This document shows, one piece after another, positions 1,716 to 31,000 of a DNA stretch of 64,000 nt. Source of the stretch: Octopus bimaculoides (lineage: Eukaryota); assembly GCF_001194135.2 (NCBI RefSeq), contig NC_068982.1, forward strand, positions 128,650,906 to 128,714,905. Direction: 5' to 3'. Position numbers and translations under genes: made by a program. The notes below the pieces were generated by a model that saw only the letters and a list, made by a program, of their open reading frames with translations, was not told the origin of the DNA and did no database searches. Each line of letters starts with the position of its first letter. The first letter of the stretch is position 1.

Positions 1716-2314
1716 TTACCTGCTTCGGTGGCCCTGACGTTGTTGGGTAAACTGACTAGAGGCATTTACTTGATGTTGCCTCTGTTGCACACGGTGCATG
1801 TCGTAGCTCCGTGATGCTTGGTGGCTTCGGGATTCTTGGTGTTCGACCTCTGACAACTGAGATTCACGGTATGAGGTTGCATAATCAGAATACCTTATTT
1901 GGTATACATCCATGGATGATGATGTGTCAGTTTCCAGATTTGGCATGTAATGATAATTTCGAACTTGTGTTACTGGATAAATATTCTCATAATATGGCTG
2001 ACGAGTGAGACGGAGAGATGTCTCATAATCAGCGAGATAAGATGATTCATGATCAGAGAATATTGTAGAATAATCATAATAATGTAGATTATGGGCATGA
2101 TGCTGACTTATATCCAGCTCATGTTGATGTGTTGTTTCATAAAGCTCTCTATAATATTGGCTGTCATGAGATTGGTCCAACTGTTCTTGAGTTGAGTGGT
2201 AGGGTAATGGTATTATAGGTCTATGTGTTTGCTGTTCTGATCCTTCATATGTGTAGTCCTGAGAAACCGATAACATTTGGTGACCACGGAACAATTGTAA
2301 AGCCATCTGGCTCT
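1716..2314 (-). CDS. Probable terminal exon: ~200-aa Tyr/His/Ser/Gln-rich low-complexity tail, stop TAA at 1716-1718
   Basis: Acceptor ttcttattcttcag|AG at 2315/2314 is in phase 1 and joins FN70 (..KASA-G) in frame: [12 protein letters not shown]...GHRSR*. 199 open codons, GC visibly above intron background. Confidence 0.72.
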
Positions 2315-5352: not shown

Positions 5353-5439
<87 letters not shown>

Positions 5440-5444
5440 ATATG

Positions 5445-5478
<34 letters not shown>

Positions 5479-7863
5479 TACATGTGTATGTGTCTATGTG
5501 TATGCATGTTTGTGTCTGTCCCCAACCACTGTTTGACAACCAGTATTGTTTTGTTTATGTCCCAGTTACTTAGCAGTTCAACAATAAGTACTACACTTAA
5601 AAAAATAAGTACTGGGGTAAATTTGTTCAATTAAACTCTTCAAGGTGGTATCACAGCATGGCCACAGTCTAATGACAGAAACAAGAAAAAGATACATGAA
5701 CACACATGTGTGCACGCACACACACAAAAGTTTCTGCATGCACAGTCTCTGCATAAGACTTGCCCAAGGTTCAATACTATGGGATCAAACCTAAAGCCAC
5801 ACAGCTTCTTAATCACACAGCTATATCAAAGTTCTGAATATTTCTTTGAATGAAATTTGATAGGCTATCAATTGCAAGAATATTTAATTCTTTTTATTTG
5901 TCATTCATATAATTGCGAATTTAGTTATCATTTGCTTTCATATTTATATAAACCAATATCAAAATTTCAATTTCAATATAAAACTCATATTTATTGGTTC
6001 TTCAAAATCATGTATATCTTCCTCAAGCTTTATGTACTGCAGATTAGTTAACTACTGAAAATATTGAAAAAAATATATATACAATTGAAGAGAAAGATTC
6101 TATGTTAAACAAACCTGGGGCCTTCTTAGGTACAACTGTTTGAGGTAATTCTTTGTAGTCTCCCCAACCAGCAACATTCTTTGCTCTGATTCTGTAATAT
6201 GTTTCAACATTTTCATAGAGGTCTCGGACTGTAAATGAATGTACAGCAGCATCCAGTGTAACAATTTCAGTCCAGTCAGAACCTGCCCAACTCTGTTCAA
6301 TTGCATAGGCAGTAATTGGAGATCCACCATCATTAATTGGTTTTCTCCAGTAAAGGGAAACAGACCATTGAGTAATTTGTCCAATATCAAGATCTTCAGG
6401 TACTCCAGGAAGTTCTATTGACAAAAAGCAAAGTTATTATTAGAAATTTACTTTAATATTTTAATGGCATTTTTATATGAAGGCATTTTATTTAAGACTT
6501 TGAAAATTAGTTGAACATTTTAAATCTTTGAATTCTATTTTACTCAGGTGGTCCTTCCTAACCATTCGATGTTTAAAAAAATTGTATATTTTTATAAATA
6601 AATATTATTAAGAATTGTATACAAAATAATTGTTTCAAATATTTTGTGCATTGTTAAAGTATAACCAATTTATTGCAGATGAATTCTAACAATAAAATCG
6701 TATATGGACCCTCAAGGGTCATATGGACCATGGCTGAGAACTGCTGCTGAGAACTGTGTACTTCTACCAATGCTTATAATTGAAATATTTATAATCATGT
6801 TTCTTATAAAACTTTGTCAAATCTAAAATGTACAGACTGATGAAATATGTTTAATTTATGAATTACAAAATTAATTCTATCAAGGAGTTTAAATCCATTT
6901 AAATATTTTGAAAAAAAGGTTGTAAAATTTATAAATAAAAAAATAAAATCTTACCAATTGGTCTACGTGGCATAACTGGACAGGCAAGCCATACAGCATT
7001 ACCAATGCCTTCAACATTTTCTGCTGCCACTCTGAATCTATATTGACGGCCTTCTTGTAAACCATCAACAATATGCATTGTTTGTGTGGTTCTACCAATT
7101 GCTCTCCAATTTGTTGAACTACCATCACATCTTTCAATCACATAGCCATACAAGTCTGTACCACCAAAATCAAGAGGTCGTGTCCATTCCAGTGTGACAC
7201 TATCTTCAGTTACTTCTGTTACATGTAAGTTCTGTGGTGCTGAAGGTTTATCTGAAAATAGTTTTAAATTATCCAAATTACATATTCATGCATATAAATA
7301 TATTTGTGTGTGTGTGCGTATGGTGTTTAGAAGATATATTAAAACATAAATTTTGATGGAAGGAATTTTAGATCAGTTTAAAACAGGAGGCTTATATCAT
7401 AAATGCTAGAGCAGTTTCAGATAGATTGGTATGAAAAGGGTTAAAGAGCATACTTAAAGCACTGTGGTTTCTCCAAGTAGTCACCAATCTTGACCAAAAT
7501 CAGTGACCAGAGTTTTACAGTCATCACAAAAGCACCTGTGCCAGTGATGCATAAACAGCAACCACTACACTCTTACAGTGGTTGGCATTAGGAAGTGCAT
7601 CCAGCCATAGAAACCAAGCCAAAATCAGACTGAAACCTGGTGCAGCTCTGTGGTATACACACACAAACACATGTGAACATTGAACTGTGTTAAATAAATG
7701 AGCAATTAGTGCTTAATATATAAGAGAGTATATGGGTTTTATTGAAACTCAGTGTTTATCTGTCACCTCCATTTTCATGCCATTACAATCTTCAGATGGT
7801 TTTTACTCAAAGGTCACAGTGGCATGGAACTTGTTTCAATGAACTACATATATACATACATGT

Positions 7864-7907
<44 letters not shown>

Positions 7908-10900
7908 GTAATGTGGAGGAAGCTTGTTATGTAGAAATAACGATGTGACTTGCTCTTTTTAGCTATTAGTAAATAAATTTTTATTCATATATTAAAAAAT
8001 GGAAATAAACTAGAAATTTATAAAGTCAGATTTGTGAATGGATAAGTATATGAGGTATTGATGTCGATAAATAATATAAAAGAATAACTTACTATATGGG
8101 CTCTTTATTTTCACAGGGGACCTCAATTCCAAAGGCTCACTGTATCCAATTTCATTATGAGCATAAACTCTGAAATTGTAGCTATGGTTTTCAGCTAAAT
8201 CATGCAGAGTGCAATTTGTATCTTCTGCAGGAACATATGCAGCTCTAACCCAAAAGCCCCATATGAGATCTAATTTTTCTATCAGATATCCAACAATTGG
8301 ACAACCACCATCATCACTGGGACGTTTCCAGGATAGTGTCAAGGAATTACGAGTTATATCAGAAACATTAAGTGGTCCAAGTGGAATCGAAGGAGTTTCT
8401 GAAAATAGAAAATTTAATGAGATTTTAAAGAACAGTTTTTTTTTTATTTTAAAGAATAGTTTTAAAGAATAGATTTTAAAGAATAGGTGAAATACATAAT
8501 TGAAATATCTGATTTATTTTGACTGGGTAAATATTTTAATTTTTACTAAATTGCTGATTGTTTTATATCTTTTACAATTATTGTTTTTGATTTTACAAAT
8601 TCATCATGACCATAGGTCTGCACTTCAAAACTGAATTAAAATTAAGAAAAAAGTTAATTACATTTGTTAAAATTAGTTATGAATCTTTTATTATACCTGA
8701 TTGTCTGGTTGGAATTACTGGTTTTTCTGTAGGCAGCGGTCTGCTAGCACCAATGGCATTAACAGCACTCACTCTGAAATCATATTCCATTCCTTCAAAA
8801 AGACCACGTATGAGGCATGATGTATCTAGTGTTCTAGTAACCTCTAACCACTTATCTGAATCAGATTCTTTGATTTCCAGGATATAATACAATAATCTTG
8901 AACCACCATCATAATATGGAGGCAACCAGTCCATTGTAACAGAAGATTCTGTTACATGACAAGGCTGAAGAGAACCTGAAGGAATATCTGGTTTTTCTGA
9001 AAAGAGAAAAGAAAATCATATTTTCATTCGATGGAAACCAGAAATTTAAACAAACAATGAAAAACAATATCAAAATATTTAAATTAATCCTTCATTAGAA
9101 TTAATGTTTTTATCCAAAACATTCATATATTGCATGGAATTTCAAAAGAATTCTAAAAGAAAATTGTTATGAAACTTTACTATGATTAGCATAATATTTG
9201 TTGAGTGTTATACATACCAGGAGGCTTTTCACAGCTGATAATATCAGACTGTGCAAAAGGTCCTTCTCCTTCCTCATTCGTTGCTGAGATTCTGAATTGA
9301 TAATTTCGTCCTTCCAAAAGTTTCTTGAGAGTGTAATCTCTTAATCCTGGTTTCACATCAGTAACATGGACCCATATCATACGAGTCATATCTCGTTTCT
9401 CAATAGAATAGGCATTTATAGCTTTTCCTCCATCACTCTTTGGTGCAGACCATTTCAGAGTAACAAAGTCAGCACCGACTTCACTTACATCCAGATCTCG
9501 AGGAGCAGATGGTTTACCTGTAAGACAAGATGTCAAAGAATGTGCAATGTAAGCAACATAAAAGACTATAACAAAATAATGATATGAATACTATATACAT
9601 ATATTAATTCAAAAGCATATTATCAATGCAAAAAGATACTCTTTTGTTTCAGGCATTTGACGGTGGCCATGCTGGAGCACCACCTTTATTCGAACAAATT
9701 GACCCCCAGGACTTGTTCTTTGTAAGCCTAGTACTTATTCTATCGGTATCTTTTGTCAAACCACTAAGTTACAGGTACATAAACACACCAACATTGGTTG
9801 TCAAGCGAATGGTTAGGGGACAAACACAGACACACAAATATATACATACGATGGGCTTCTTTCAGTTTCCGTCTACCAAATCCACTCACAAGGCTTTGGT
9901 TGGCCTGAACCTATAGTAGAAGACACTTGCCCAAGGTGCCACACAGTGGGACTGAACCCAGAACCATGTGGTTGGTAAGCAAGCTACTTACCACACAGCC
10001 ACTCTTATGTATTTATAATAAATTATATTTATAGCTTTCCTTAAGCAAAATTACATCATCATTATCATCATTATTTTATGTCCACCTTTTGAAGCTGGCA
10101 TGGGCTGATTCAAACTGTTTATCAGCAAGAACTTACCGTAAGGACTTCTGACCAAGAATGGTTCGGTAGTCATCAATGGTTCAGACAGCCCAGCACTGTT
10201 TTCAGCAAACACTCGTGCATGATATTCACAGTCTTCAGAGAGGAAAGTTAATTCACACGATGTAGTATTTGCAGGAACTCTTTCACCCATTGCCCATGAA
10301 GACTTCCAAGTCTCTTTCTTTTCAGTGATATAACTTATGATTGGTGATCCACCATCATTTTCACTAAGCTTCCATGATATCACAGCCGATGATTTTGTTA
10401 TGTTATTTACAGATAATGGTCCAACAGGTCTTGATGGAGCATCTGAAAATACATGTACATAAATTTAAATACTTGCAAAAGTGTATTATAAAATATGAAG
10501 TATCATTTCAAATTAACATTACCAAAAATAAATCTAAGTTTTTAAAATTTAATTTAACTTAAAAAGATGCAGGAAGGTTGAGACTGATCTGCATTGATCA
10601 TTCCCAACCCCAGGACAAAAGTATCTGTTTTTGCTATACAAGGCTTATTTGCAGTTAAAGAAAGGTCTGGAACAAGCAAACTCAAAGACTATTTTGGTAA
10701 CACAATAGTGCAGTGCTAACAATGATAATTTTCAGAAATCTCCAAAAACCAAAACCTTAAAAATCTTAATCCTCCATAGGAGGATCATCTTTCTATGATT
10801 AAATTGAATTTTCTACTGCAAACGTCATTAGATATATAAAATCTAAATTATATGGCTCCCTTCAAAATTGTGAACTAACAAACTTATTATGTCTCCTATA

Positions 10901-11632
10901 TTATTATAGAATTTAACATGACATAATCAGAATTGGAAACTTATATTTTAAATACTGAAAATTTCTACAGAATATAACTTAAAATATAAGTACTTAACTT
11001 TAAATGAATAACAAAAAATAAAATAAATAAAATAAAAATGAATGTAGGAAATACAAAAGTAAGCTTACATATTTTCTTCTCAGGAGTAATAGCGTTTGGA
11101 ACAGGTACAATTTTACTTGAACCAACTTCGTTTTCAGCTGCAACTCCAAACAAGTAAAGTTTGTCACTGCGTAATTTTTTGGCAGTATACATATTGACAA
11201 AGGAGTCCACTGAGTCTATTTTTGCCCAGTTGCCATCTTGGCAGAGGTAAATGTTATAACATTTTATGCTGTCACCACCGTCAAATCTAGGTTCTCTCCA
11301 TTCAATAGTGCAATTATCGCATCCAACAGACACGATTTTAACACCTACTGGAGATGAAGGCAATTCTGGAAGAAGAAAAAGAAAGCAAGATACTCAGAAA
11401 TAATAATATACATATTCAAAACAAAATAGAAAACATTTCATTTGTTTATTATGCTTTTAATACATATTAGTTCTTAAGGACTCAGGAGAAGAAATGAAAT
11501 AAGAAAATGTTCTGTTTTATTTTCAACAGCTTTTGGAAATAAAAGATTCTACATTGATGATTCTATGGTTTTTAAGCTATTCCTTTAAGTGTATGATTAA
11601 AATATGTATGAATGTGTGTGTGTGTGTGTGCT

Positions 11633-11665
<33 letters not shown>

Positions 11666-14600
11666 NNNNNNNNNNCTCTCAATACTCAAGATATCAGCTG
11701 TTCTCAGGACCTGTGTGTCTGGAGTTTTTAAGGTCCAGCCAACATTCAGAATGTGTCTGAGACATTTCTGATGAAAGTGTTCAAGGACCCTTACATGATG
11801 TTTGTAAAGGGTCCGTGTCTCACATGAGTAAAGGAGCGATGTCAGTACACATGCATGGTACACAACAATTTTTATTTGCTATGTGATGCCATCCTGGAGA
11901 AGGACATGAGACTGAAGAGACTTGAAGGAATCAGTTGCTCTCTGCAGCCTGAAAGATATTTCATCATCCAGGGAGCAAGTGTGTTGCCCAGGTAGACAAA
12001 CTTGTCTACCACTTTCAGAATTGTTCCTTCAACCGAGATAGCTGGTTCCACATATGGATTTCCTGGTGCAGGCTGAAGCATTACAGCAGTCTTGTCCAGG
12101 GCTAATGCTGAATCCAAATGCCTTGCAAGAAGCAGAAATATGATTCATAAGTATTTGCATGTCATCTTCTGTATGAGTGACTAAGTTACAGTCATCTACA
12201 TAAAGGAGGTCATGAATAAGAGACTGGAAAACTTTTGAATTGGCAGAAAATCAGCGCAGATTAAAGAGGCAGCCAGAAGATCAATACCTGACATATATTC
12301 CCAGAGAGCTAACTTTAGTAAAAGCATGAGTAAAAGCAGCAGCAAAGTACAAAGAAAAGAGAGTTGGGGAAAGGATGTCACCCTGCTTGACACCATTCTT
12401 TACAGAAATGAGTCCCGCCATGTCACCAACATTGACCCAAGCTTCCATCCCATCATGAAATGATTTAATTATAGTTACAAATTGATCCAGACATCCAGGT
12501 TTGCCAAGTATATATATAGTTAGAGATATATGTATTAAAAACACATTATAATATATTCTTTAAAAACAAAATCTGGAATTAGATAACTTTAAAATTAGTT
12601 TCAAATTCTATTTTATCATTTTGATGAAAATAAAATGTTAAAAAAAATATTTTCTTACCAAGTTTCATCTTTGGACAAGCACTGTCGTATCCTTCAAGAG
12701 CAGGTCCTTCTCCTTCTTTGTTGATGGCTCTAACTCTGAAGAAGTATTCATAGTTCACAACAAGGTTTCTAGCAGTGAATCTGGTAGTGTATGCATCCAC
12801 TGTTCCTGCTCTGCCCCAGAGTTTACGTCTAAGCTCTCGAATTTCAATGGCGTACATTGTAATAGGAGTTCCACCATCATATCTCGGTGGAGCCCATTCT
12901 AAATCAGCAGAGTTCTCAGTGATATGAGATATTTTCAGAGGACCAGTTGGAGCTGATGGAAGTTCTGTAAAAGAAATTATTCTATATTAGTACATAATTC
13001 AAAGTATTCATACAGACATGAAGAATTATATCTGCTCACTAAGTTTAACGTTTTAAAAAAGGTATAGTGGATATGAATTATCACGGTGTGTTATAATTCT
13101 AGCTGTATTTCAATTTCAGACCATGATACTTGGAATTAAGAATTGTTATGCACCACATTTGTTGCACTTTCAATTGCACAGATCTAGTCTTTTATTCAAA
13201 TGAATAATACAAATATAACAAAAAATACACAATGTCTAATCAAAAGGGAATAAGTTATACTAAAATATAATTTACAAGGAGAAAACTACTTAAATGAGAT
13301 AATCCAATATGATGTTGAATTTATAAAAATAACCTACCAAATGGACTCTTGATAATAACAGGCACATCCATGTCTAATGGCGCACTGCATCCAACTCTGT
13401 TCAATGCAAGCACACGGAAGAAGAAAGCATCACCTTCAGAAAGGTTTTTGATGGTAGCAAAAGTATCATCATAGACTCTTTCTGAAAACTGCCACATCAT
13501 CCTGTTTGCTTCACGTTTTTCAATAACATATTCTGTAACAGCACATCCACCATCATCTGTTGGAGGCTTCCATTCAAGAGTGACAGCCTCGTTGGTAATT
13601 TCAACAATGCTGATAGGACCAGATGGAGGATTAGGTTGACCTAATAAATAAAATTGGTTTGTTTATAATTCAAGGTTTAAAAGTAAATACAAATGAGAAA
13701 ATTAATTATATAAGATATATTAAAGTATGAACTTATTGATTTATAGATATAATTTAATATTAAGCTAAATACTTAAGACTAGATAGATTTTAATTCCATA
13801 AACTAAAAAATGAGATCATATAATATTCCAAAATTCTTAAGTTCTGTAGATGCCCAAAATATGTGACTGGATAAATCTAAACCCTTCTGATAGCAACTCA
13901 CCTGGGATAGCTTTTGATTCTATGATACAAAACTTGCTTTTAACTCAGGTATCTGAGTTAAAATCATACATCAAAGTTTCATGTTAATTTATGTTCCAAT
14001 CACTGATTTAATAATGACAGTTATTTTACTAAATTCTCCATTATTTCTTTAAAATTAATTGAAACAAAGGCAGTGTACTTCAATAAAAATGTAGAAACAA
14101 TATTTCTTGATTGAGTGATAGTTAATTATCTGTAGAAAATTAGAAATAAAGAAGATAAAAATAAACTTACACAGGGGCTTTTTAGGAATGAAAATGTCCG
14201 ATTCCAAGTATTTGCTCTGTCCAACTGCATTTATTGCTGTAATACGGAAGTAATATGGCTGATCAGTTTGAAGATCAGGTACTCTGATATACTCAACATC
14301 ACTTATGTCAACTGTTTTCCAGTCAGCAGTATCAGTAGCATATTCAATACGATAATGTTTGATAGAAGCGCCACCATTGTTCTTAGGAGGTAGCCACTCC
14401 AGTGTCACAGACGTTGCTGTAATTGATTTGAAAATAACTGGTCCACCAGGAGCTGAAGGAACAGCTACAAAAAAAAAAAGATAAATGAATAAATAATATG
14501 CAAATAGTAGTAACTAATAGATATGAGATACATTTAATTCTAAAATACTTCTTAAAATTTTTAAACTTTGAGTAATGGAAAACATTCAAATAAAAAAACC

Positions 14601-16269
14601 CAGGGTAACTAGTTTTACTTACTAGCAACTTTCAATGGTACAATAGGCTCCTTTATTTCATTTGGTTTGCTGCGGCCTTCACTGTTGACAGCAAAGACTC
14701 GGAACTGATATTCTTTTCCTTCAACCAATTTTTCTGCAATGAATCTTGTATGCAATGTACCAGTTTCTCCAACTTGAAGCCATGAAAGGTGAGAAAGGTC
14801 TCGCCGTTCAATAACATAACCAGTAATAGGTTTACCTCCATCAAACTGTGGAGTATCCCATTCTAAGGTTACTGATTTACTAGTTATATCTTCAATACGA
14901 AGATGTGCTGGAGGATCAGGTGGAGCTAAAATTAGAAATAGATTCATCAATTAAATAAAATATCTAATGAAAGAATCAATTTTTATGTTATTTTAAAACA
15001 ATCTTTTTGGTGGTATATGAATAAATTAAAATCATGTAAAAATAACTATGGCCACAGTCTAATGACTAAAACAAGTGAAAGATAAAATATGATTGTAAGT
15101 ATTTTATATTAGAGTAATAACTTAGTTATAAGTAGAGTTATGAGCCTAATCTAAATATATAATGCAATACATCATGAATAATTCAGTCCATCATTTATGG
15201 GTTGTAAATTTAATAACTTGATACTCTCACATTGCTTAGCAAACTAATATTTCATATTTTTGTGTCATGGCCCAAATATTCTACCTCTTTTATGTTCAAA
15301 CTGGCCAGATCCACTCTGTCACACATATCCTACATCGTCATTCTAAAAGTAAACAATCACATAATTGATATCTCAAAGCTAGAAATTATGCACCATTAAT
15401 TTATAACTATGTCAATATATGAGCATTACATTTGACAGAGTAATATGAATGATAAAGGGTTAAGATGGCAGAAAATAAATTATGTAAATAGTATAAAAAA
15501 TAGTTATTTTATATAAAAATAAAAATAACGGCTTGGAATTTTTTCTAGTTAGATTTTTGACAATGAATACTTACCAAATGGACTTAGGATCTTGATAAGT
15601 TTCTTGGCTTCTAATGGAGATGATACGCCAACACTGTTTTCAGCAATAATTCGGAATGTATACTCTTGACTTTCTTGAAGTTTTCTAATAACATACTCAA
15701 AGGTCTTTGGTGAGACACAATCAACATATTGCCAACTTGTTCTCCATGATTCTCTTTGTTCAATAATGTATGACAAAATTGGAGAACCACCATCATCTTT
15801 ACTAGCTTTCCATTTAAGCCCAACAGAATTACGCTTGACATTTTCAATCACAAGCGGTCCTTCAGGTGCTGTAGGTACCTCTGCAATAAAATATATTGAT
15901 TATGAAATACATTTTCAAGCAATTAAATTTAGTTTTTAATTTGTCTACATTTTAGTAATTTATCAACTAAATCTTTAATGTTGAAGCTATAAATAAACGT
16001 AATAGATATCATATAGTTTATAACTATCAAGAACATTTTTCATATTCATTGTGTAATACCTTGAAAAATGCCCACACATATATGACAAAAAAGAAAAATT
16101 ACTATTTTATCGTAAAATCAATACTGACCACAACCAATTAGAAATTATTGATAAACATTGAAATGTTTACTACTTTGGGTTACAACTGAAATTTATCATT
16201 AGATTATACTATTCAAAACTAAAATGTAATGATATTCTGTAAAACAGCTTTGGCACAATTAAAGTCATC

Positions 16270-16311
<42 letters not shown>

Positions 16312-19300
16312 TACAATGCAAATTGCATAATACATGCATACATAAATCACTTTTATTTCAGATAAAACATTATAATTACCAATTGGTTTCACTGTCTTAA
16401 TTGGTCCTTGTGTCTCTAGCCTGCTGCTTTGACCAATTTCATTTTCAGCAGAAATGCCGAAATAATATAATTTTTCAGTTTCCAAGTCAGTAACAACATA
16501 ATAGTTTACGAAAGCACCAACTTTAGCAGCCTTAGTCCACTTATCTTTTCCTTCTGGGCAGTATTCAACGATGTAACTTGTGATATCTGATCCACCATCG
16601 TCTAATGGTTTTCCCCATTCCATAGTAACAAGGTCTTTTCCAATACTCTTGATACCTAAGAATTCTGGTGGTTTGGGAACAGCTATAATGAGGAGAAAAT
16701 AGTTTTTATGTACAACAGTTATATATCATATCAATTTGAATTATGATAATAGATAGACCAATTTAAGCAAAATTTGATATTTGACATTAATAAGAAATTC
16801 AAAGAATTTAAAATGAAATATTAGATTTCTAGTGTCTAGATAATTTTTAATATACGGATTTGTTTTCAAAAAGATAAAATTATATCTTATGATACCATCA
16901 TTGTCTTGTATCAATTAACCAATTTCAGAGGATTGAAACTCTTTACATCAATTTGGATCTTTTAAACTTATCTAAGAATTTAGTAGCATACTATATATTT
17001 TCAATATCAAAATACTTACTTGCTGCTTTGACAGGTCTAGCTGGTTGGTCTGATGTGAGAGGAGGTCCTTGCCCTTCATCATTCTTAGCTGAAATTCTGA
17101 AGAAGTACTGCATTCCAGGTACAAATCCAGTTACAGTGTAATTTGTGGAACTTGATCTTATTTCACACATAAAGCTCCATGTTTGTCTATTAATTTCTCG
17201 TACTTCAATAACATAGTGTGTAATTGGTAAGCCACCATCATCAGTAGGAGGTTTCCATTTAAGATCTACTGATTCTTCAGTCAAATTGCTTTGAACCAAA
17301 GGACCTTCTGGAGCTGATGGTTTTTCTATTGGAAAAATAAAGAAGCCATATGAGTACAGAAAAATGATTTATATATCTATTGAAGTTATAAGTCTTTTCA
17401 ATTCAACAGATTTGATATAAAAACTAATATAATAAGAAGTAATGTAAATGTAACATGTAAATAATACAATCCATAATCATATATATTCATGCTTCTTTTT
17501 TTATGTTAGCATAGGTTGGATGGTATTTATTTGAGGCAGTATTTTTACAGCTGGGTGCTCTTTCCATTGCTAACCCTTTTCAGCGGGGCTTATTCACTAT
17601 TTCAAGAGGACAGATCACTGGAATTTGATGTTCTCTAAGAATGTAACCATAACAACACTGTTTATTTTGTTCTGACAATCTCATCTAAGAAGCAGTTATG
17701 ATAACTTACACACACACACACACACACATGAAATACAATTGGTTTCTATACAGTGCTTGCCAACTAATTTCACTTACAAGGCATTTGTCAGCTAAAGAAA
17801 AACAGTTTCTCAAAGTACCAGATTATAGCAATGAATCTAAGACTGTGAAGCAAATCTCTTAATCACACAGCCATGCGTATATATATGCATAGCTGTGTGG
17901 TGTATATATATGTGTATGGATGTGTGCATGTGTGATATATATTATATTTAATTAACATATATAATTATATTTAATTAACAAAAATGTAAATAACTCACTG
18001 TAAGGGCTCTTAATCAAAACGGGGTCTTCCATTTCAAGAGGTTTACCAGGACCAACTTCATTTTCAGCAATAACTCTGAAGAAATATTCATTTCCTTCTA
18101 TCAGATTTGTTATAGAGAATTTAGTTATGCTTTCATCAACTGATTGTACTTTACTGTAGAAAGATCTTGTCTTTTCTTTACGCTCAATTATGTAAGCAGT
18201 GAGAGGATGACCTTGAACAGGTGGTTTCCATTCAATAACTGCTGAACTTCTCTGGACATTACTTACAACGATAGGACCAACTGGCTCCGATGGTACAACT
18301 GGAAAGGACAGAGAGATTCTCAATAATACTCTAAATAATACATTCATTGTATATAAAGATAAACAGTGTTAAAGAAAGATTTCATTATATATGCAATTAT
18401 AACTAATGCTGAATTCTTTTTTTAGTTCATCAAGTAATTCAGGTTCAACATAAATACTTTTAATATTAAATGCAATGATACCATAGATTTCTGTAACAAT
18501 GTTAACATTGAATATCTACTATAGGAATTGGAATTTAAAAGATGAGAATTTGCTTTAAGAAAACCAAGTGATAATTTTAAGGTATGAAACAGTATTTAAA
18601 CTCTTGAAGATTTAAATTCCTTTTTGACCATTTTATAATTATAAATCCCAGTCTTTTGTTAATTAATGAGAAGTCCTACATATGAAGGCATGTGACCTAG
18701 TAGCTAGGGTGTTGGACTCATGGTCAATTGTTCATTATTTTCAAAATTAATAAAACGAAAGCAATGTATTTTCACATAAATATATCAACAAATCTTTTAT
18801 ATATATAGGAGCTTGAATATAAAAACAGTTGATCAAGAAAGTGCCAGATGATGCAAAGATGGAAAAATATGATAACAAGAATATATCTTTGTATAATACC
18901 TTTCTCTTTCTTAGGAGCATACATATCAGAATCAAGCGGAGTACTTTCTCCTAAAGCATTGACAGCTGTTATCCTGAAAAAGTATTTGCCACCTTCTTTG
19001 ATGTGGTCTTGAACCTTGTATTTAAATGTATTTCCATCAACAGTTTTAATACATTTCCATTTGTCATCCACATAGAGGTATATTTTATAGCCAGTGATAG
19101 CTGATCTGCCATCATCTCTTGGTGTACGCCATCCCAAAGTAACCGATGAGATTGTTGCATCAATGAATTTCACAGGTCCAACTGGAGATGATGGGGGTTC
19201 TGGAAATTTGAAAAAAAGTTTTTGGAATTTATTACAAAGTTAAACCTTTGATGGTAAAATACCTATTTCCATTAATAGATGGAATAATTTAATAATGACC

Positions 19301-22300
19301 AATAATTTCCACTAAAATCAATAACTGCACCATGATTTAATAACAATAATTACCTGGTTCTTTTCTTGGAACAACTGGATCAATAGTTGCCAATGGTGGA
19401 CTGATACCTTGAGTGTTTTCAGCAGAAACTCGGAAATAGTATTGCTTTCCTTCATTGAGGTTTTTAACATTGTATTTGTTTTCCTCATGGTCAGCTTTAC
19501 CTGCCTTCATCCAGCTTCCCCAGATATCAACCTTATATTCAATGATATAGTGAATAATTGGTAATCCACCATCTGAAATAGGTGGTCTCCATTTTATGGT
19601 TGCTGATGAATCTGTGACATCAGATACAGTCAAAGGTCCTTCAGGAGCAGAAGGAGCACCTGTGGGTTAAAAAGAATATTTGTCGATTGATTACACAAAA
19701 ATGTTTTATATTTTCATGTTTAAATGTTCTTTTGGCTATTTTACTAAGGTAACTTGTTTGGAAAATTAAGATTACTTATTTTTTAGTTAATACCATTGTT
19801 GTTTTGAATTATATAAAAATATACACAATAAGTTTACGTTTATAGGCTCTTGAATCTGAAAATGATTTTACTTACTGTGTGGACTCTTAGGAATAACACC
19901 TTGGTCAGTTTCAATGGCTGTTGAATATCCAATAATATTTTCTGCATATACTCTAAAGAAGTATTCTTGTCCTTCTCTAAGCTGTTTTACACAGGTTGTA
20001 GTGGTATCTGCTTTAACACGAGAATAGAATCCCCACGAAGATTTCCAGCTTTCCCGTTTGTCAATTATATAATTGTCAACAGGTTTGTGGGCTTCATATG
20101 GACTAGATTTCCAAGAAAGTGTAACTTGGTTACTCTGAACATTAGTCACTTTCAAAGGACCTTCCGGAGGAGCAGGAAGTTCTGAAAAATGGAGAGAAAT
20201 CATTTTTATCAAAGTTTCTATTTAACATGTTTTATTTACTGTATTGTTATACTCCAAAGTATTAATAATATAATGTAAAATACAAAACAAATAGGTGAAC
20301 AAATTAATTTTAAACATCGTAAGATAATAAATAAGAACTGTAGTTAAATTCTTAAATACTTGGTATTTATTACAACTATCAATTTTTATTCTTTTTTCAA
20401 TGGAATATAACTTTGATTAATTTTAATTCTAGATTTTATGTCGTAAAGTAAACTGGGTAATAAACCAGCAATTTATTTTAACTTACCAAGCTGTTTCTTT
20501 GGCCTAATTGCCTCTTCAGTTTTACGCATTTGCCCAACTCCTATGTCATTTTCTGCTGCAATACCAAAAAAGTACTCCACACCTTCTTCTAAATCAGTGA
20601 ATGTATATTCACTAACGAAAGACTTCACAGTAGTAACCTTATCCCAAGACGTTCGGGAACATTTACTCAAGGAGATGTGGTACCTAGTTATCATGGAACC
20701 ACCATCGTTGCGTGGTGCACCCCATTGGATTGTAACATCATTTTTACCAACATTGGTAACTGTTACATGAGATGGAGGACCTGGCTTTTCTGAAAACAAA
20801 AATAAGAAAGTAGAAATTACAAAATTTTATTCAAAATTTTTAATTATAGGAAATGTTAGTTTAAAAGCTTTAGTGTTCTGTCAACTACATATATAAATTT
20901 GCATGATTTAATGAGACATAGTTATCAATTCTAATCCAGTTAAACTGAGTCTTTTGTGAAATACATCTCTACTTTGAATTTCCCCATATATGATTTGAAT
21001 AACTTTCATGATCCATTTATCCTTATCAAGTTGCCTCAATACTCACTATAGTATGTAATCAAACCTTTTCCTCTTATTATCTGGTAATTATTTGCAAAAA
21101 TTGTCTATAAATCTATAACTTAATGTTAAAACCAATGTATCGTATTGTGTATTTGTAAATTTACCAACAAATCAAAAAATTAAAAAAAATTTAAATAATT
21201 TTTTACCCGGTTGTTCTCTTGGTTTCACTGTTTCTGCTGAAATTAATGGAGAACTATAACCTTCACTGTTGACAGCAAAAACTTGGAATTGGTATTCTTT
21301 TCCTACTACCAAATTAGTGGCAGTATACCGAAAAGTAGTTGAACTGACTTCTGCAAGCTTGGTCCAAGAGGTACGCCATACACCTCGGTATTCAATGATG
21401 TATGCAGTAATTGGTTTCCCACCATCACTTTCAGGAGGATTCCATTCCAGATCAGCAGTGCTGTCTGTAACACCACTTAGCTTCAATGGTCCAACAGGAC
21501 TTGATGGAGGACCTAGTGTTTAAATAAAATTAAAACATATTAACAGATAATAAAAAATTTCAAAATTCTGCTTACATCACTAAATAAACTTTTGCTTTCC
21601 AATGGTATGTGTTTCAGTTGTTTATTGTGAAGAGTATGTGCAATGAGTTATTTTGTTAAATGGTGTTAATGATTGTGTGTGAGTTGTTGGTGTGCTAAAC
21701 ATTGTGTGTGAGTTGTTGGTGTCATAGTTTCCTACTGTTGATTATATGCTGTGCATTATTTTACTGGTTGGAGATTTTGTAAAGTAACTGTTGTGTGAGT
21801 TGTGTTATTTAATTAGGCAATGATTGTATAGGATATATGTTGTGTTATTTTATTGGATAGTGATTGTATAAGATATGTGTCGTGTTATTTCATTGGATAG
21901 TGATTGTATTGAGTATATGTGCTGTATGTGGTGTGTAGAGAGTGAGTGTTGGAGTCATGCTATTGGATTGAAAATACCTTGTTTAGAATATAGGTTTTGT
22001 TTAATATTATTATCATTAATCTATTTGCTTATAATTAACACAGTGAATGTGATAAAAGAAAACAAGATATATCCAAATGTAATTTTTCAGAATTAAAATT
22101 TGTGGGAATCACTTAATCAATCTAAACTTCGTGAGAATTACTTAATCTACAAAATTAACAATTAAAAACATTTAAAGTAACTGTGAAAGAAATATAAGTC
22201 ACATACTTATATGACTTACCATAAGCATCTTTAGCTGTGAAAAGTTTGGATTCCAAAGGCAAACTGATACCAGCTTTGTTTTTAGCAAAGACTCTGAAGA

Positions 22301-25300
22301 AATAGTCATTATTCTTAGTTAACTTTTTGATCTTAAATATTGTCTTATCGGCTCCAATTTCATCAGCAAGATCCCAGCCAACTCGTTTGGCATTTCTGAA
22401 TTCAATAATATATGCTGTCAGTGGAGAACCACCATCATGTTTAGGAGGTTCCCATTGAATTGTAATTGACTGGCTTTGAACTTCAACTGCCTTTAGTGGA
22501 CCTGTTGGTGCATCTGGAGTTGCTGTAAATATCCAAGTAAAATCCATAGTATAGTGATTGTTAAAGAAAAGTAAACTACCTAGCTTTCATACTAAATATC
22601 AAACTTACTCTATAGCATAAAACAGGATTTATTTTTATTTTTATACTTAACAGTTGTTTAGACTTTATTAAAACTTAAACAATGATTTCTTTTGTTTACA
22701 GAGACTGCCAGATAAATATATTTAAAATATGTATAACATGTCTTTTGCAGTTTACGAAAAGTTAAAGCATTTTTACAGATATGAAGTAAGATATATAAAA
22801 AAATGTCTTATCAATAAAATTATCATAATTTGCAGAAACATTTAAAGTATTGTAATTTGTATGATTATCATAGATTTTATATAAGAGATGAAAACGAAAT
22901 AAATATATTTGTATTTTAGGTATTGAACACTTTAGAGGCATGTTTATTCTATTAAATTAAATTTTCTAAGAATATACATACCAATTGATCCTTTAACTAA
23001 AACAGAATCCGATTGAACAGGATGACCAGAACCAATTTCATTAACAGCAGATATACGGAATATATATTTGCTATTTTCTTCAAGGTTCTTAACCTTATAT
23101 TTGGTGTGGTGACCTTCAACAGATGTTACTTTATGCCAGTCATCGCTTCCTTCAAGTTTGGATTCAATAATGTAGTTACTGACAGCACTACCACCATCTT
23201 TTGATGGTCGGGTCCAGTGAAGAATTAATGAATCAGCTGTCATATCAGAGTATTCCAAATAGTCGACAACTCCTGGAGCCTCTGGAATAAAAAATTTAAA
23301 GCAATAATTTAGCCATGAGTTTGTCTAGAGTCTATCTGATTGCTAAGCTCATTTAACTTTAGTCTCCTAAATCACTAAGTTCATTACTGAAATAATTTGA
23401 CATATCCATCAATGATGTAATGAAGTTAAGCTCCATATTTATCAAAAACCCAAAATATTGTAAACTAATATAGCAGAAAAATATTTCATTTTAAACAGAC
23501 ATAATGTTTCATAATTTTCTTTGCAGTTTTCAAGTAGCACACTAAACCATAACTTCAAATGGAAATATTCCTTAAAAACTTAAGATCTTTAATTGATGAC
23601 TAATATATGTAACTATAAATCTATGTGAATAGGCTAACAGAGTTCTTGTAATCCAAAAACATATAGATCAAGTTAACGTTCTTTTATCAATAATACATTT
23701 AAGTAAGCATTTAATTAACTGTATTAAAATTAAAAATTTTCTGTAATCTTATCTAATACTTAAGGAAATATATTCAGAAATTATTCCCAAATTAGAACTC
23801 TTAATATTTGGAAGCAATTCCTTAATAAAGCTCCACTAATAGTAGTTAAGAATAAAGAAGATAAGAAAAGCCAACTATTTATTGTTATACAGAAGTACAA
23901 AAATGTTATAAACACATATATTATACATATATTTTATAAACTATAGGAACGATATCTTGGTACTTATGTATAATTGATTTAATTGTTAGATTATAAAAAT
24001 AATAAACAAATAGAAAGCAACCACTTGCTTTTAAATTATTTATACTTTTAAATTTTTAAAATATTTACCTTTTGGACGTTTTGTCCTGATGGAGTCAGAA
24101 GATTTTAAAGCAGGACTGAAACCCTCAGGATTTTCTGCAATTACTCTGAAGATGTAATCACATCCTTCAAGAAGATTCTGCACACAGTAAGCTGTAAGTT
24201 TTGGTCCAATTCTACCTGCAGTAAGCCATGTTGATCTACTCTTATCAAGGCGTTCAACAACATATCCTGTAAGTGCTAGACCACCAGTGTCCGTTGGAGG
24301 TTTCCAAGATATCACAGCTGAATCAGCAGTGACATCAGAAACAATCAGAGGACCTTCAGGAGTTGAAGGTACACCTGTTAAATGATAAACAGAAATTATT
24401 GTAATATTCCCAAACTTGGAACATAATATTCATAAAGACTTCTAAAAATTTTATAAAAATTGCTTTCTATTCCCATTACTGTATTTATTTACTAATCACA
24501 CTCTCTCCACATAAGTTTTTATTTTTACATCTGCTTCCTTAACAAAATATCTCTCTATTATAAAAGTGCTTAATGAATAAAGCACACTGGTAGAGTGTCA
24601 GCTCATAATCAATGATCATATCAGAAAGAAAAGATGGAGTAATATTACCATTTTTAACTTTATATCTTTAGTAATATTTTTACAACTTCAGTAATTTAAA
24701 ACTTTTTCTATAGCAAAAACTTTATTAAAAATTTCTTTGATATTATCATACACAGTTTTAATTGATGAAAGAAAAATAAAAGAACAACGATGTGAAAACC
24801 GATAGCACTCAGTGAAGAACTAAAAGGAAAAGCAGTTCCTGTGTTAAATTAGAGATTTTTTAAATGGCATCTTCCATTGCTTCACAAATTTATACATTAT
24901 AATAATAACCATTAAACACACTGGATAATATAAAGTATAAGGACAAGAATTCCATATTTTGAGGCAACTACAGATTATATGTATAATGTATTCTTCAGAA
25001 ATATGACATAATCAGCATCTTGAGAGGCTTAAGGGTTACACTGTTTCATTCTATGCTTTATTTTGCTCTTGGATTGCAAAAGTTTAATCCCTGAAATACA
25101 GTGTAATATAGTAGTCACAAGCTCAAAAGATACAATACAATATTGTGGACTTATAAATGTAATTTCTATGCATCAGTGTCCCATCTCCTGGTTGTTGAAT
25201 ACTTCAAGTAGAATCTATTTTTGACTCATAATATAGTAATCTCTTCACTAAATGTGACTGATTTTTGTTATTGTTTTTAAGCAGGTGCTACCTGATACAT

Positions 25301-27950
25301 ACAACACAACGTTTAAAAGCTGTTATAATTCTTCTTAGAACTATTCCCCATCTATCCATTTTAGTAGGAAGTATTTTAAAAGAAAACTATCAGATATTAC
25401 AAAACTTACTGAATGGACTCTTTGGAATAACAGCATCTGATATCAAAGGATCAGATTTTCCAACAGAATTTACTGTAGAGATTCTGAAGAAATATTCTTG
25501 ATTTTCCTTCAATGATTGTGCACAATAACTTGTGGTAGTTGATGGTACTTTAGCAATTGTAGTCCAAGAGGATTTCCAGCTTTCCCTTTTATCTATGATA
25601 TATGAAATAATAGGAGAACCACCATCGTGTTCACTGGGTTTCCATGAAAGAGTCAAATATGTTCTTTGAATATCACTGAAAACAACTGGTCCAATTGGTG
25701 GGGATGGTTTTTCTGAAAAAGATAAATTAATTAATCAAGTTCCAATTATACAGATTCACAGCAATAACTGACAACATCTGTTGATTTGATTTATTTCTAT
25801 TGGTTCATGGCATTCAAAATAATTTCACTAATTAATATTAAATTGCTTCTAAGAAAAAAAATAACAAAATTTTAAGCAATTTGAAATAAGTACAAATCTG
25901 AACAAATTTCCTGGAAAAAGTTTTAATAAAATTCAATCTTCACTTCTTTTAATATTTGTATTTATATTAGGATTATATAATAATACAAAGAAAGTAACTG
26001 AACAATTGAATATTACATACCAGCTTCCTTTTGAGGTACAATAGCAGATGTAATTTCTGCACGTTCTCCGGTACCAACTTTATTCTGGGCTGAGACAGCG
26101 AAAAAGTAAGGAACACCAGTTTTTAAGAAATCAGCTTTGTAATATTCTTCACCAAATTTGGTTGTTGCAATCTTGTTCCATTTTGTAGATCCTTCTTCAC
26201 GCATTTCTATAATATAATTTGTAATTTTGGATCTTCCATCCTCTTTTGGTGGTTTCCAGTCCATGACAACATAATCTAATCCCACTCTTGTTGTTCTTAA
26301 GTCAACAGGACTTCCAGGTACAACTATTAAATTAAACAAAATAAAAATAATGAAATAACAAAAAGACTTAAATTGTTATTTATGAAATAATAAACCAGAA
26401 TATTAAAAATATATATTTCTTTTATTGAAACAATAAAGTAACATTTTAGAAATAAGCTAATTTTTAATTATAATAATTTACTTTCAAAATTAAGAATAGA
26501 AATGAATATATACCTATATTTTTGTGAGGTTGTACAGGTTCTGCTGACTCTAATGGCTGACTTACTCCTTCTTCATTAAATGCAGAAATTCTGAAATAAT
26601 ATTCGGTGTCATCTCTAAGGTCAAAAACAGTTAATTTGGTTGTTTTACCATCAGTTTCACCAACTTTGACCCATGTAGGTCGAGTTTTAGCTCTCATTTC
26701 AATGACATAGCCAAGCAATGGAGACCCTCCATCTGATCTTGGTGGATTCCAAACAACATCACAGAACCTATCTGATACATTATCATATACCACTGGTCCC
26801 AGTGGAGATGTTGGTTTACCTAAAATATCAAGAAAAATTATTTTTAAAAATTATAAAAAAAATAATGAGAAAATTGATAGAAATAAATGTACAAAATTGA
26901 ACATTATAGAATATTTCAAATAGTGAAAACCTACCAAATGGACTTTTGATCTTAGTTGTTAAATCAGTAACAAGAGGATCACTGTTACCAACTCTATTGA
27001 CAGCAGTTACTCGGAAATCATATTCAGTGTCTTCAGTCAAGTCTTTCATATTATAAGATGTTATATTTGCAGATACGCGATCAATTTGACTCCAGAATGA
27101 TCGAATAGACTCTTTCTTTTCAAGTATATAACCTGTAAGAGGTGAGCCACCATCATCTTCAGGAGCGTTCCAGCTTATACTGGCAGAGTTTCTGAGGACA
27201 TCAAATACTTTGATAGGACCTCTTGGTATGGATGGAATAGCTGAATAAATAAATATGAGAAAGAAACCATAAATATTAATATAAAGTTAAAAAATATATA
27301 TAAACAAGAACAGAAAGATGGAAAAACTATTTTGTACTATACTACATTTCTGATATTATTTTGCTTAAAAACATATATCTACATGAAAAACATACTTTAA
27401 TGAATTTTAAGCTTATAAAATTATGAACTACTTAATATATGCAATTTTAATTATGTTCTTGAAATTAAATAAGAAAAAAATATACCTAAAGGTCGTTTTG
27501 GTGTAACTGCATGATCAGCATCACATGGTTTGCTCAAGCCTACTGAATTTTCAGCACAGACAGAGAAATAGTAATTAACATTTTCTCGCAGAGCTTTTAC
27601 AGTGTATGTATGTTCGTATGCACTGACTGAAGTTATTTTCTCTCGGTCTTCATATATGTCAAAACGTTTATAAATTATGTAGTTGGTAATCTTAGATCCA
27701 CCATCTGAAATAGGTGGTCTCCATTCTAAAACTGCAAAATCTGGTCCTATTTTGGTAGCTCTTAAGTGAATAGGAGGCTCTGGGATATCTGAAATTGAAA
27801 AGAAGTAATAGTGAATTAACAAGAAAAATATACATTTATTTATGTCTAATAAACTCTTTGTCTATTTCTTTCTTTCTCTCTCTCCATATGCCCACACATA
27901 TATACATATATTTATGAACATACATTTTATACAAGCACATATATTCATAC

Positions 27951-28030: not shown

Positions 28031-31000
28031 CACAGATATAGCCCTTTGACTTGTCAGAGCTTATCAAACTTGTTAAACTATCCAAGCCATGTCAGTATGG
28101 AAGCCAGATACTAAATGATGATGATCATCATCATCATTATCATTATTTAACGTCCGCTTTCCATGCTGGCATGGCTTGGATGGTTTGACTGAGGGCTGGC
28201 AAGCTGGGAGGCTGCACCAGGCTCCGATCTGATCTAGCAAGGTTTCTACAGCTGGATGCCCTTCCTAATGCCAACCACTCTGAGAGTGTAGTGGGTGCTT
28301 TTTACGTTCCACCAGCATGTGAATCAGTCAGGTGGCACTGGAATCGACCATGCTCAAATGGTGTCTTTTATGTGCCACTGGCATGGGTGCCAGTCAGGCG
28401 ACACTGGAATTGGTCATGCTCAAATGGAGCTTTTTTACATGTTACCAGCACAGGTGCCAGTCAGACAGCACTGGCATCAGCCATGCTCGAATGGTGCTTT
28501 TTACATGCCACTGGCACAGAAGCCAGTCAGGTGACACTGGTATTGGCCATGCTCAGATGGTACTCTGTACGTGTCACCGGGACGGGTGCCAGTCAGGCAG
28601 CACCAGCATTGATGATGATAATTTTTTTAGATGAATTATTTTGATAGAATCTAATTAAAAACTTACAGATATTTTTAGTAGTTTTTGTTGTATCATATGT
28701 TTCCAGTGGTTGACTTTTCCCTTCAGAATTGAGAGCAGTGACTCTGAAGAAATATTCGGTATCTTCATTTAGGTCATGAACAGTGAAAGAAGTGGATTTG
28801 GAATCGACTGAACCAGCTTTCGACCAGGAAGAACGAGTTGAAGCTTTGTATTCAATAAGATAAGATGTGATAGGTTTTCCTCCATCTTTTTCAGATGGCT
28901 TCCATGAAAGATCAATGGATTTGTATGTGACATTTTGTGTCGTTAATGGTCCAACTGGTCGAGATGGTACATCTGAAAATGAAAACAAATATCAGAATGA
29001 GAAAATGAATTTTAAAAATTTATGTGAATTTGGAAATAAAATGCTTAGAAAATAATTATTTTATTAATAAATAAATATATTAAACTTTATTCTTGGTTAA
29101 TGTTTACAATTTGATTTCATTTATTCAAAGTAAATATATTGGTATTAACACATATACATATACTTATGTTCATATACATATTTATATGCATGCACACACA
29201 AATAATAGAGTAACTTTATTAACTTTATATGAACTGAAAAGTCATAAAAATGAAATCAATAAAACAAAGGTGAACTAAAATATTATCAGAAATCAAATAG
29301 TACAAGTATTCCTTTTGTTATGAAAGCATTGCATTCCTGAAAAGTTTGGTGCAACATATAATTTTCTAACATGTAATCCATTTTTTCATTGGCTTCCATA
29401 TTATACAGCATGGGAAAATAGGTTTCATGTCTGTGCTGATGCCACATTAAAAGCACTTGTGCCAGCACCATCTACAAAACACTCAGTATACTCTGTAAAG
29501 TGGTTGGTGTCAGGCAACCCATCCAGATATAGAAACCATACCAAAACATGACGACTGGAGCCTGGTGCAGCCTTCCAGCTAGCCAGCTTCTGTCAAGCTG
29601 CCCAACCCATGCCAGCATAGAAAACAGATGTTTGATGATGATGATGATAATGGTATGATGATGATGATGATGATGATGATGATAATGATTATAATGCTGG
29701 CAGAATCGTTAGCACACCGGGCGAAATGCTTAGTGGTATTTCGTCTGCTGTTACACTCTGAGTTCAAATTCTGCCGAGGTCAACTTTGCCGTTCATCCTT
29801 TCGGGGTTGATTAAATAAGTACCAGTTATGCACTGGGGTCGATGTAATCGACTTAACCCCTTTGTCTGTCTTTGTTTGTCCCCTCTATGTTTAGCCCCTT
29901 GTGGGTAATAAAGAAATTGATAATGATTATGATAATGATGCTATGGAATTCCACATCATGGCAATATTTTCAAGAATGCAATGATTCTGTAATGCAGGAG
30001 TCACTTGTATTTGATTTATTAAAAAAAGTAACAATAAAATAATTTAGATTTCAGCATGGGGCTATAAAAAGCTTTCAGTCACTCTAATATTTTAGATTTT
30101 TATACTTACCAAATGGACTCTTAACAAGAGTTGCTTCTTTAGTGTCCAAAGGTTCACTGCTTCCTATTTTGTTTTCAGCATAAACTCTAAAGTAATATTC
30201 TGTTTTCTCATGGAGATTTTTTATTTGATACTCATTTGTTCCTTCTCTCACTTTTTCAACTTTAGACCAGTATTTGTTGGAAGAAGCTCGTTTTTCAATA
30301 ACATAACCTGTTATAGGAGAGCCACCATCATCACTAGATGGTTTCCACTTGATGCAGACTGAATCTTGTTGAATGTTGGTAACAAGAAGAGGACCAGTTG
30401 GTTTTGATGGTACAACTGTATAACAAAATTATAGATAGTATTGAGCAACTATTTTAACAATGAACTCATCTTTAATTCAAACATTTTATGATTGACAGAC
30501 AAAATTTATATGGAAATATAAGGAAATACAGGATAAAAATCAATTTTGTTTTATCAAAATGAATAATTGTTTTTAATTATTTAATTATCATGATTTAATT
30601 TTCAATTTATACGAAATTGCTACGAAACCAATTTTTGAAATGAATATAAGCAAAAACTTAAAATCTCAACAAATGTATTTTTGAAACATTAAAGGAAATA
30701 TTAGAATTGAGAATATAATACTAACGGAGTCCTTTCTTTGTTGTCACAGAGATTTCGGTGTCAGCTTTGTTACTAGCACCAATCTTATTCAATGCACAAA
30801 TATTGAAGTAATAGTCCATGTTTTCATCAAGTTTTGTTATACGGCAGCTTGTATCATAAGAGTCAAGTGATGTGACTGTGGTCCAGTTGCCTGGTTTCTG
30901 TGGTGACATTTGCACAACATATCCTGTAATGGGTGTTCCACCATCAACTGCTGGTGCAGACCATTCCAATTCAACAAAGTTTTCTCCAACTCTTGATGCT

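Follow-up and report, generated by a model that had tools for sequence, protein, structure and literature searches.

The 64,000-nucleotide (nt) stretch of the Octopus bimaculoides genome analyzed here (the window; contig NC_068982.1, positions 128,650,906 to 128,714,905) holds the distal portion of a single giant titin/connectin-family gene, which runs across it on the minus strand and encodes 68 fibronectin type III (FN3) domains. A profile built from recurring open reading frames was used to scan the window, and all 68 matches lie on the minus strand. Each domain corresponds to a single exon, 294-306 nt long, that opens after an AG acceptor, closes before a GT donor, and is flanked by phase-1 introns; about 15 of the exon ends were placed by alignment position and by hand. 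The spliced frame of the 68 exons is stop-free over 6873 codons (amino acids), and neighboring domains abut without linkers. Among these consecutive exons there is no immunoglobulin (Ig) domain, nor does any other long conserved open reading frame lie between them in the window, which is AT-rich (∼32% GC) and carries microsatellites and short open frames. We number the domains from D01, which is cut at the window end, to D68. An earlier note on this DNA used FN numbers that exceed ours by two in the region of interest, because two domains of the N-terminal zone are absent at assembly gaps (58516-59070 and 51863-51952); its FN46-FN69 are therefore our D44-D67, with 25712 the first base of exon D44 and 6115 the last base of exon D67 on the minus strand. 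From D44 to D68, 25 of 25 domains match the Pfam family fn3 (PF00041), the best with an E value of 5e-18; the score of D44 is 53.7 bits, where the curated cut-off is 25.

The domains fall into two zones, both on the minus strand. The N zone (D01-D43, FN1-45; 26021-63998) holds five nine-domain units (9-mers) with the domain order H A B C A2 B2 E F G. The C zone that follows is made of four six-domain units (6-mers), whose positions we call a-b-c-d-e-f. The first (D44-D49, FN46-51; 20487-25712) is delimited by its splice sites, phase-1 introns, and Pfam fn3 matches and is collinear with domains T25-T30 and H01-H06 of the Lottia gigantea and Haliotis rubra genes described below. The exon table and Pfam fn3 likewise give the second (D50-D55, FN52-57; 16380-20181; collinear with Lottia T31-T36), the third (D56-D61, FN58-63; 11069-15880; Lottia T37-T42), which includes a gap-bearing intron, and the fourth (D62-D67, FN64-69; 6115-10442; Lottia T43-T48 and Haliotis H21-H27).

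Three positions of the 6-mer carry markers that had been picked out in the earlier note, and all three recur as described there. At position a, the pattern E[ST]W[KR][ST]SW matches only D44 (ESWKSSW; 25410-25712), D50 (19876-20181), D56 (15575-15880), and D62 (10137-10442), that is FN46, FN52, FN58, and FN64, among the 68 domains. Position c is occupied by the short domains D46 (FRISAVN; 22982-23281), D52 (18900-19199), D58 (14171-14464), and D64 (8697-8996), corresponding to FN48, FN54, FN60, and FN66, whose exons measure the 300, 300, 294, and 300 nt that had been given; these are the only matches to FR[IV][ST]A[VI]N in the C zone, and the same pattern is present in four domains of the N zone. 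The third marker, FG[IV].AEN, is found at position f in D49 (VG...FGIAAEN; 20487-20789), D55 (16380-16682), and D61 (11069-11365), as claimed for FN51, FN57, and FN63; it occurs also in D28 and has been lost in D67 (6115-6414), the position-f domain of the fourth unit. Two domains of the second unit depart from the rest in another respect, as the near-invariant DGG motif of the B-C loop is lost in D50 (19876-20181), which reads SPYEAHKP, and in D53 (17999-18298), which reads VQ--GHP with a two-residue deletion.

We used the mean pairwise identity of domains at a given lag as a measure of periodicity, calculated for D44-D67 in the C zone and for the gap-free part of the N zone, D18-D43. In both zones the values at lags that are not multiples of 3 amount to 32-34%, and a base period of 3 is common to the two profiles. 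The earlier note does not mention this base period beneath the 6 and the 9 (9 being 3 × 3). Its three classes are recognizable by the pattern VPSxPxGPL..NVT..SADLEW, by being one residue shorter, and by ending in KSPFG. Over the base period the N zone is a clear 9-mer, with 56.8% identity at lag 9 and 51.0% at lag 18 compared with 43.7, 44.5, and 44.9% at lags 3, 6, and 12, and within-class identities of 49-67%. The C zone is a weaker 6-mer: identity is 38.8% at lag 6, compared with 35.5% at lag 3, 37.6% at both lag 9 and lag 12, and 36.1% at lag 18. The proposed switch of superrepeat at FN45/FN46 is thus borne out by a lag-9 identity of 56.8% upstream and a period of 6 over D44-D67. The junction itself is not sharp, D42 and D43 matching the 9-mer classes at 42 and 37%, compared with 54-63% for D40 and D41.

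Judged from the window sequence alone, the 6-mer is real but weak. When domains of D44-D67 were shuffled within their mod-3 classes, pairs of the same mod-6 class exceeded other pairs by 1.8% (p = 0.025-0.03 for identity and 0.01 for BLOSUM scores), and lag 6 exceeds lag 3 at p = 0.002-0.005. The earlier note had expected lag 6 to exceed lag 9 over FN46-69; the direction is right, by a thin margin of 1.2 points that does not reach significance (p = 0.07-0.19). The pattern that would have refuted the note, clustering at lag 6 no better than at lag 3 or lag 9, was not seen. Most of the period-6 signal comes from positions a, c, and f, and positions b and e are hardly separable in the window. The identity between the c class and the f class is 32.6%, equal to background, and the 6-mer is therefore not simply 2 × 3. 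The suggested tree of domains by position class gave a poorly resolved result: a neighbor-joining tree of single domains recovers orthologue clades for only 9 of 24 positions, and bootstrap values for the classes are at most 10%, domains of 100 residues having little resolving power, and we relied on the lag and nearest-neighbor statistics in its place.

A protein search identified as the best database relatives a set of unnamed Lottia gigantea gene models on one scaffold. These models (LOTGIDRAFT_141638, LOTGIDRAFT_141610, and LOTGIDRAFT_141663) are orthologues of the window gene, together with Haliotis rubra models annotated as "titin-like"; in that search no close orthologue exceeded 60% identity, and no match was longer than ∼1060 residues. 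In 58 kb of the Lottia scaffold there are 50 FN3 domains (T01-T50), preceded by I-set Ig exons. For D44-D67, each domain D(n) pairs with Lottia T(n-19): mean identity between window and Lottia is 45.8% in this register, 41.6 and 39.9% when it is shifted by -6 and +6 domains, 36-38% at other multiples of 3, and ∼34% elsewhere, and the expected partner is the top Lottia match for 14 of the 24 window domains. The Lottia array has the 6-mer in its own right, with 42.2, 42.3, and 42.4% identity at lags 6, 12, and 18 compared with 37.8, 36.9, and 38.8% at lags 3, 9, and 15 (p < 1e-4). The best Lottia match falls in the same mod-6 class for 22 of 24 window domains when orthologues are included and still for 17 of 24 when they are excluded (chance 0.13, p = 1e-10). 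Haliotis domains H01-H30 are collinear with Lottia T25-T50, share 56% identity with Lottia and 44% with the window, and show the same lag pattern. An aromatic-Lys version of the position-a motif stands at the matching places in both gastropods (Lottia T25, T31, T37, and T43; Haliotis H01, H07, H14, and H21). In a fourth mollusc (Logan assembly L008, 42% GC), domains Q02-Q12 are collinear with T23-T33 and ESWKSSW is found at the second position a. The 24-domain array is thus present in the same order in Lottia, Haliotis, and the fourth mollusc, and hence predates the split of these lineages.

The lag profiles of the orthologues and the assignment of domains to classes across species therefore confirm the 6-mer where the window alone is thin, and they bear directly on the suggestion that only the three-domain period is real and that the 6-mer is a chance pattern conveyed by a few motifs. 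Such a reading would account for the small difference between lags 6 and 9 in the window and for the inseparable positions b and e, but permutation within mod-3 classes gives p = 0.025 in the window, p < 1e-4 in Lottia, and p = 0.011 across species for non-orthologous pairs. Moreover, of the 19 best non-orthologous Lottia matches that fall in the right mod-3 group, 17 are also of the same mod-6 class (p = 3e-5); Haliotis repeats the lag profile, and positions c and f resemble each other no more than background. We consider a chance pattern scarcely credible.

Upstream of the array the Lottia scaffold presents a different picture. Its domains before T25 are plain 3-mers, with identities of 63, 56, and 50% at lags 3, 6, and 9, and within the 58-kb scaffold stretch we found no collinear counterpart of the window 9-mers in the Lottia N zone. 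Further upstream still (L003 1-9600) lies a run of single-exon I-set Ig domains with the recurring pattern ELPxEIxKPLxD...FECEVSK...W, followed by an Ig-Fn-Fn-Fn stretch (T01-T07) and then by the all-FN3 part.

The relative age of the two zones can be read from these identities. Copies of the 6-mer within the window (38.8%) are less alike than orthologous positions of window and Lottia (45.8%), and copies of the 9-mer are more alike (56.8%) and have no one-to-one counterpart in Lottia; the 6-mer zone is therefore the older and more diverged of the two, as had been supposed. We conclude that the 6-mer zone is ancient and frozen, and that the 9-mer zone is a younger, lineage-specific expansion that is still changing. 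At the N-terminal end, the first two 9-mers (D02-D09 and D10-D17) are 85-98% identical in nucleotide sequence, intron flanks included, when 50826-53525 is aligned with 57402-59961 and 56484-56746 with 63738-64000. This near-identity reflects a very recent duplication, gene conversion, or partial mis-assembly of the repeat. The near-identical stretches end at the gaps 51863-51952 and 58516-59070, where both units lack the B2-class exon. Elsewhere in the N zone, the intron between D39 and D40 contains a minisatellite (28325-28603) of about four copies of 66 bp (or 133 bp), which gives rise to spurious plus-strand open reading frames and raises the local GC content to as much as 38%.

A rival reading gives the periods no periodic function. 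They might reflect only the growth of the gene by unequal crossing-over of blocks of three, six, and nine exons, the product being a generic spacer or elastic element. Duplication of blocks is easy where every domain is a phase-1 exon; identity in the 9-mer zone falls with distance, from 56.8% at lag 9 to 51.0% at lag 18, as is typical of ongoing tandem duplication; the newest 9-mer copies are 85-98% identical in DNA through their intron flanks; and the 3-mers of the Lottia N zone decay likewise, through 63, 56, and 50%. The 6-mer zone behaves otherwise, showing no decay in Lottia, where lags 6, 12, and 18 all stand at 42%. Exactly 24 domains have been kept in the same order in four species while the neighboring zone expanded freely, and position-specific motifs have been kept across species as well. 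We regard duplication history as the main rival explanation of the periods, though an unlikely one.

Conservation of the 9-mer was also sought in a relative that is ∼10% diverged from the window in DNA (Logan SRR11869394). The candidate contig, L004, was set aside for this purpose: its 12 FN3 domains reach only 60-66% identity with any domain of the window and do not follow the order of the window 9-mers. They therefore belong to another part of the gene or to a paralogue, in either case outside the window. Six of these domains (L004 891-2690) are encoded in one uninterrupted exon of 1.8 kb, compared with one exon per domain in the window.

The third 6-mer is interrupted by an assembly gap (11666-11675, N's), which sits in the 1293-nt intron between D60 (12659-12964) and D61 (11069-11365), between the 3′ end of a decayed long interspersed nuclear element (LINE) and a (TA)n run. 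The LINE remnant is a reverse transcriptase fragment on the minus strand (11597-12560) with a weak match to Pfam RVT_1, and its only database relatives are four Octopus vulgaris proteins of 69-79% identity, so that this one transposon family by itself points to a probable octopod host. D60 and D61 are both of phase 1 and splice in frame, and there are exactly six exons from D56 up to the position-a domain D62. Their orthologues are directly adjacent both in Lottia (T41-T42) and in Haliotis (H18/19-H20). Hence, no conserved exon is hidden in the gap.

The four 6-mers are followed, as the earlier note had it, by one further FN3 domain and a tail. D68 (FN70; 4548-4853, minus strand) is supported by the exon table and Pfam fn3 and shows 38-39% identity to T49 as well as to T50 of Lottia, which leaves its orthology ambiguous; no further FN3 domain was found downstream of it in the window. 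The intron between D67 and D68 contains a long (TA)n/(CA)n microsatellite (5292-5634) with mirror-image open reading frames on both strands. The terminal exon (1716-2314, minus strand) has a strong acceptor at 2314 that is phase-1 compatible with the D68 donor, and it encodes ∼199 codons rich in Gln, His, Tyr, Ser, and Glu before a stop codon at 1716-1718. It matches no Pfam family and is probably disordered. In the SRR11869394 relative the exon shows 91.6% nucleotide identity, an identical acceptor, and no insertions or deletions in the coding sequence, compared with 33 and 31 gap positions in its flanks, and the ratio of nonsynonymous to synonymous substitution rates is 0.32, which together identify it as a genuine coding terminal exon. 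A counterpart was not detected in the Lottia or Haliotis DNA examined. The 736 nt that lie 3′ of the stop codon (980-1715) are 94.2% identical to the relative, compared with 91.6% for the coding part and 89.7% for the upstream intron, which suggests a constrained 3′ untranslated region.

That the array is the C-terminal zone of the protein, as had been proposed, is uncertain. A conserved terminal exon does follow D68 here, and no kinase is encoded within the window, where D68 is succeeded by the exon with the stop codon. In Haliotis, on the other hand, a 6483-residue Ig-rich model runs into the array, and a 3937-residue model, which begins inside the final domains of the array, goes on to include Ig domains, FN3 domains, and a protein kinase (Pkinase). 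In gastropods, the array probably lies in the interior of a titin-like gene, and in the octopus it may be C-terminal for one isoform only.

The named database matches of the window domains are titin, twitchin, and myomesin, at ∼30% identity. The highest-ranking PDB entries are the titin chains of the cardiac thick filament (8g4l, E = 2e-129; 8q6t, E = 3e-121) and the titin FN3 triplet A84-A86 (8bnq, E = 1.5e-53). Compared with that triplet, classes 1 and 3 of the base period match the first domain best and class 2 the middle one, in an ambiguous mapping to titin FN3 types A, B, and C. We also weighed the possibility that the array comes from an FN3 protein of the cell surface or the extracellular space, such as an adhesion or matrix protein, with no place in the sarcomere. 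All-FN3 arrays are typical of extracellular proteins, and receptor phosphatases, contactins, and fibronectin do appear among the weaker PDB matches; the best receptor phosphatase, however, reaches ∼4e-17 where titin reaches 2e-129. The domains also carry W..P..DGGSPI.GY.IE, a motif typical of muscle FN3 domains, and the Lottia and Haliotis arrays are flanked by arrays of I-set Ig domains and by the kinase-bearing model named titin-like. An extracellular origin is, in our judgment, very improbable.

We favor, with moderate confidence, the reading that the C zone is an ancient, conserved array of four six-domain copies in a titin-family gene, and that it most likely lies along a periodic partner in the thick filament. 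Its FN3 domains appear closest to those of titin that are bound to the thick filament, and their number, their order, and position-specific features such as the aromatic-Lys motif of position a seem to have remained constant over a very long span of evolution. From the fixed count and order and the titin-like type of the domains we infer that the partner is probably the myosin/paramyosin thick filament, along which the same binding surface would recur every six domains. At the titin spacing of ∼3.9 nm per domain, units of three, six, and nine domains would span ∼12, 24, and 35 nm, and the variable 9-mer zone would adjust the overall length. The proposal of the earlier note that these are two functionally distinct filament zones is a hypothesis.

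Several points weigh against this reading. Its periodicity shows in the window with the nonsignificant margin over lag 9, the hardly separable positions b and e, and the weakly supported tree reported above. The gastropod gene models that bear it out are automatic predictions. The thick-filament role is drawn from homology and conservation, and the spacing of 6 × 3.9 nm matches no simple multiple of the 14.5-nm myosin repeat. In having no Ig domain among 68 domains, the window is also, to our knowledge, unlike every characterized thick-filament segment of titin or twitchin. A more specific proposal, made by analogy with titin and in our view distinctly doubtful, is that the 4 × 6 array could be the molluscan counterpart of the titin C-zone, a template on a paramyosin-cored filament, with the 9-mers tuning filament length in cephalopods. 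The six- and nine-domain units would then fit the filament lattice, as eighteen domains at ∼3.9-4.0 nm would measure ∼70-72 nm, close to the 72.5-nm period of paramyosin.

The superrepeats of titin are the textbook protein ruler, and chordates are the only animals in which they are known in detail. The thick filaments of invertebrates differ widely in length, and we know of no titin-like ruler described for them. If the proposal were true, invertebrate thick filaments would gain a ruler long thought missing, and a zone frozen across molluscan classes beside one that is still expanding makes a concrete, testable candidate. The locus also offers a clean natural example of how superrepeats arise, first of three and then of six and nine domains. 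Even if the periodicity is a matter of duplication history only, it documents the unusually strict conservation of 24 domains.

The literature searched contained no account of a titin-like, all-FN3 array with superrepeats of three, six, and nine domains or of its conservation across molluscs, nor any of the repeat structure of the Lottia and Haliotis models; the architecture is likewise not treated in a review of connectin evolution whose coverage extends to Octopus and Crassostrea. The nearest relatives of the array are the orthologues themselves. In Lottia and Haliotis all 24 domains recur in unchanged order, and matching positions share 44-46% identity with the window. They differ in that Lottia has plain 3-mers upstream where the window has 9-mers, in that two FN3 domains follow the array in the gastropods and one in the window, and in that the gastropod models are unnamed or fragmentary predictions. 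Twitchin and projectin, with their (FN3-FN3-Ig)n arrangement, are invertebrate muscle giants of the same family and share the three-domain base period. The third member of the triplet is FN3 in the window and Ig in those proteins, and no kinase lies within the window. We know of no higher-order level of six or nine domains described for them.

The closest parallel in architecture is the titin A-band, whose domains are of the same muscle FN3 sequence type. There, six seven-domain units (the D-zone) are followed, from N to C terminus, by 11 eleven-domain units of ∼43 nm (the C-zone), and the zone with the shorter unit is considered to be both older and more diversified (PMC10665226), in agreement with the two-zone comparison drawn in the earlier note. 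Both proteins thus have two successive zones of different unit length, in which domains resemble their positional counterparts in other units more than their neighbors, the shorter-unit zone is more diversified and presumably older, and growth has proceeded by duplication of whole units. The order is opposite, as the earlier note also stated, the long-unit (9) zone coming first here. The composition differs too: titin units are built as Ig-(Fn)2-Ig-(Fn)3 and the like, whereas the window has 68 consecutive domains without Ig; units comprise 6 and 9 domains over a base of 3 in the window, compared with 7 and 11 in titin; every domain of the window is its own exon; and within the window the array is succeeded by a probably disordered terminal exon instead of a kinase. 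The all-FN3 array of three-, six-, and nine-domain periods is thus a new variety of titin-type superrepeats.

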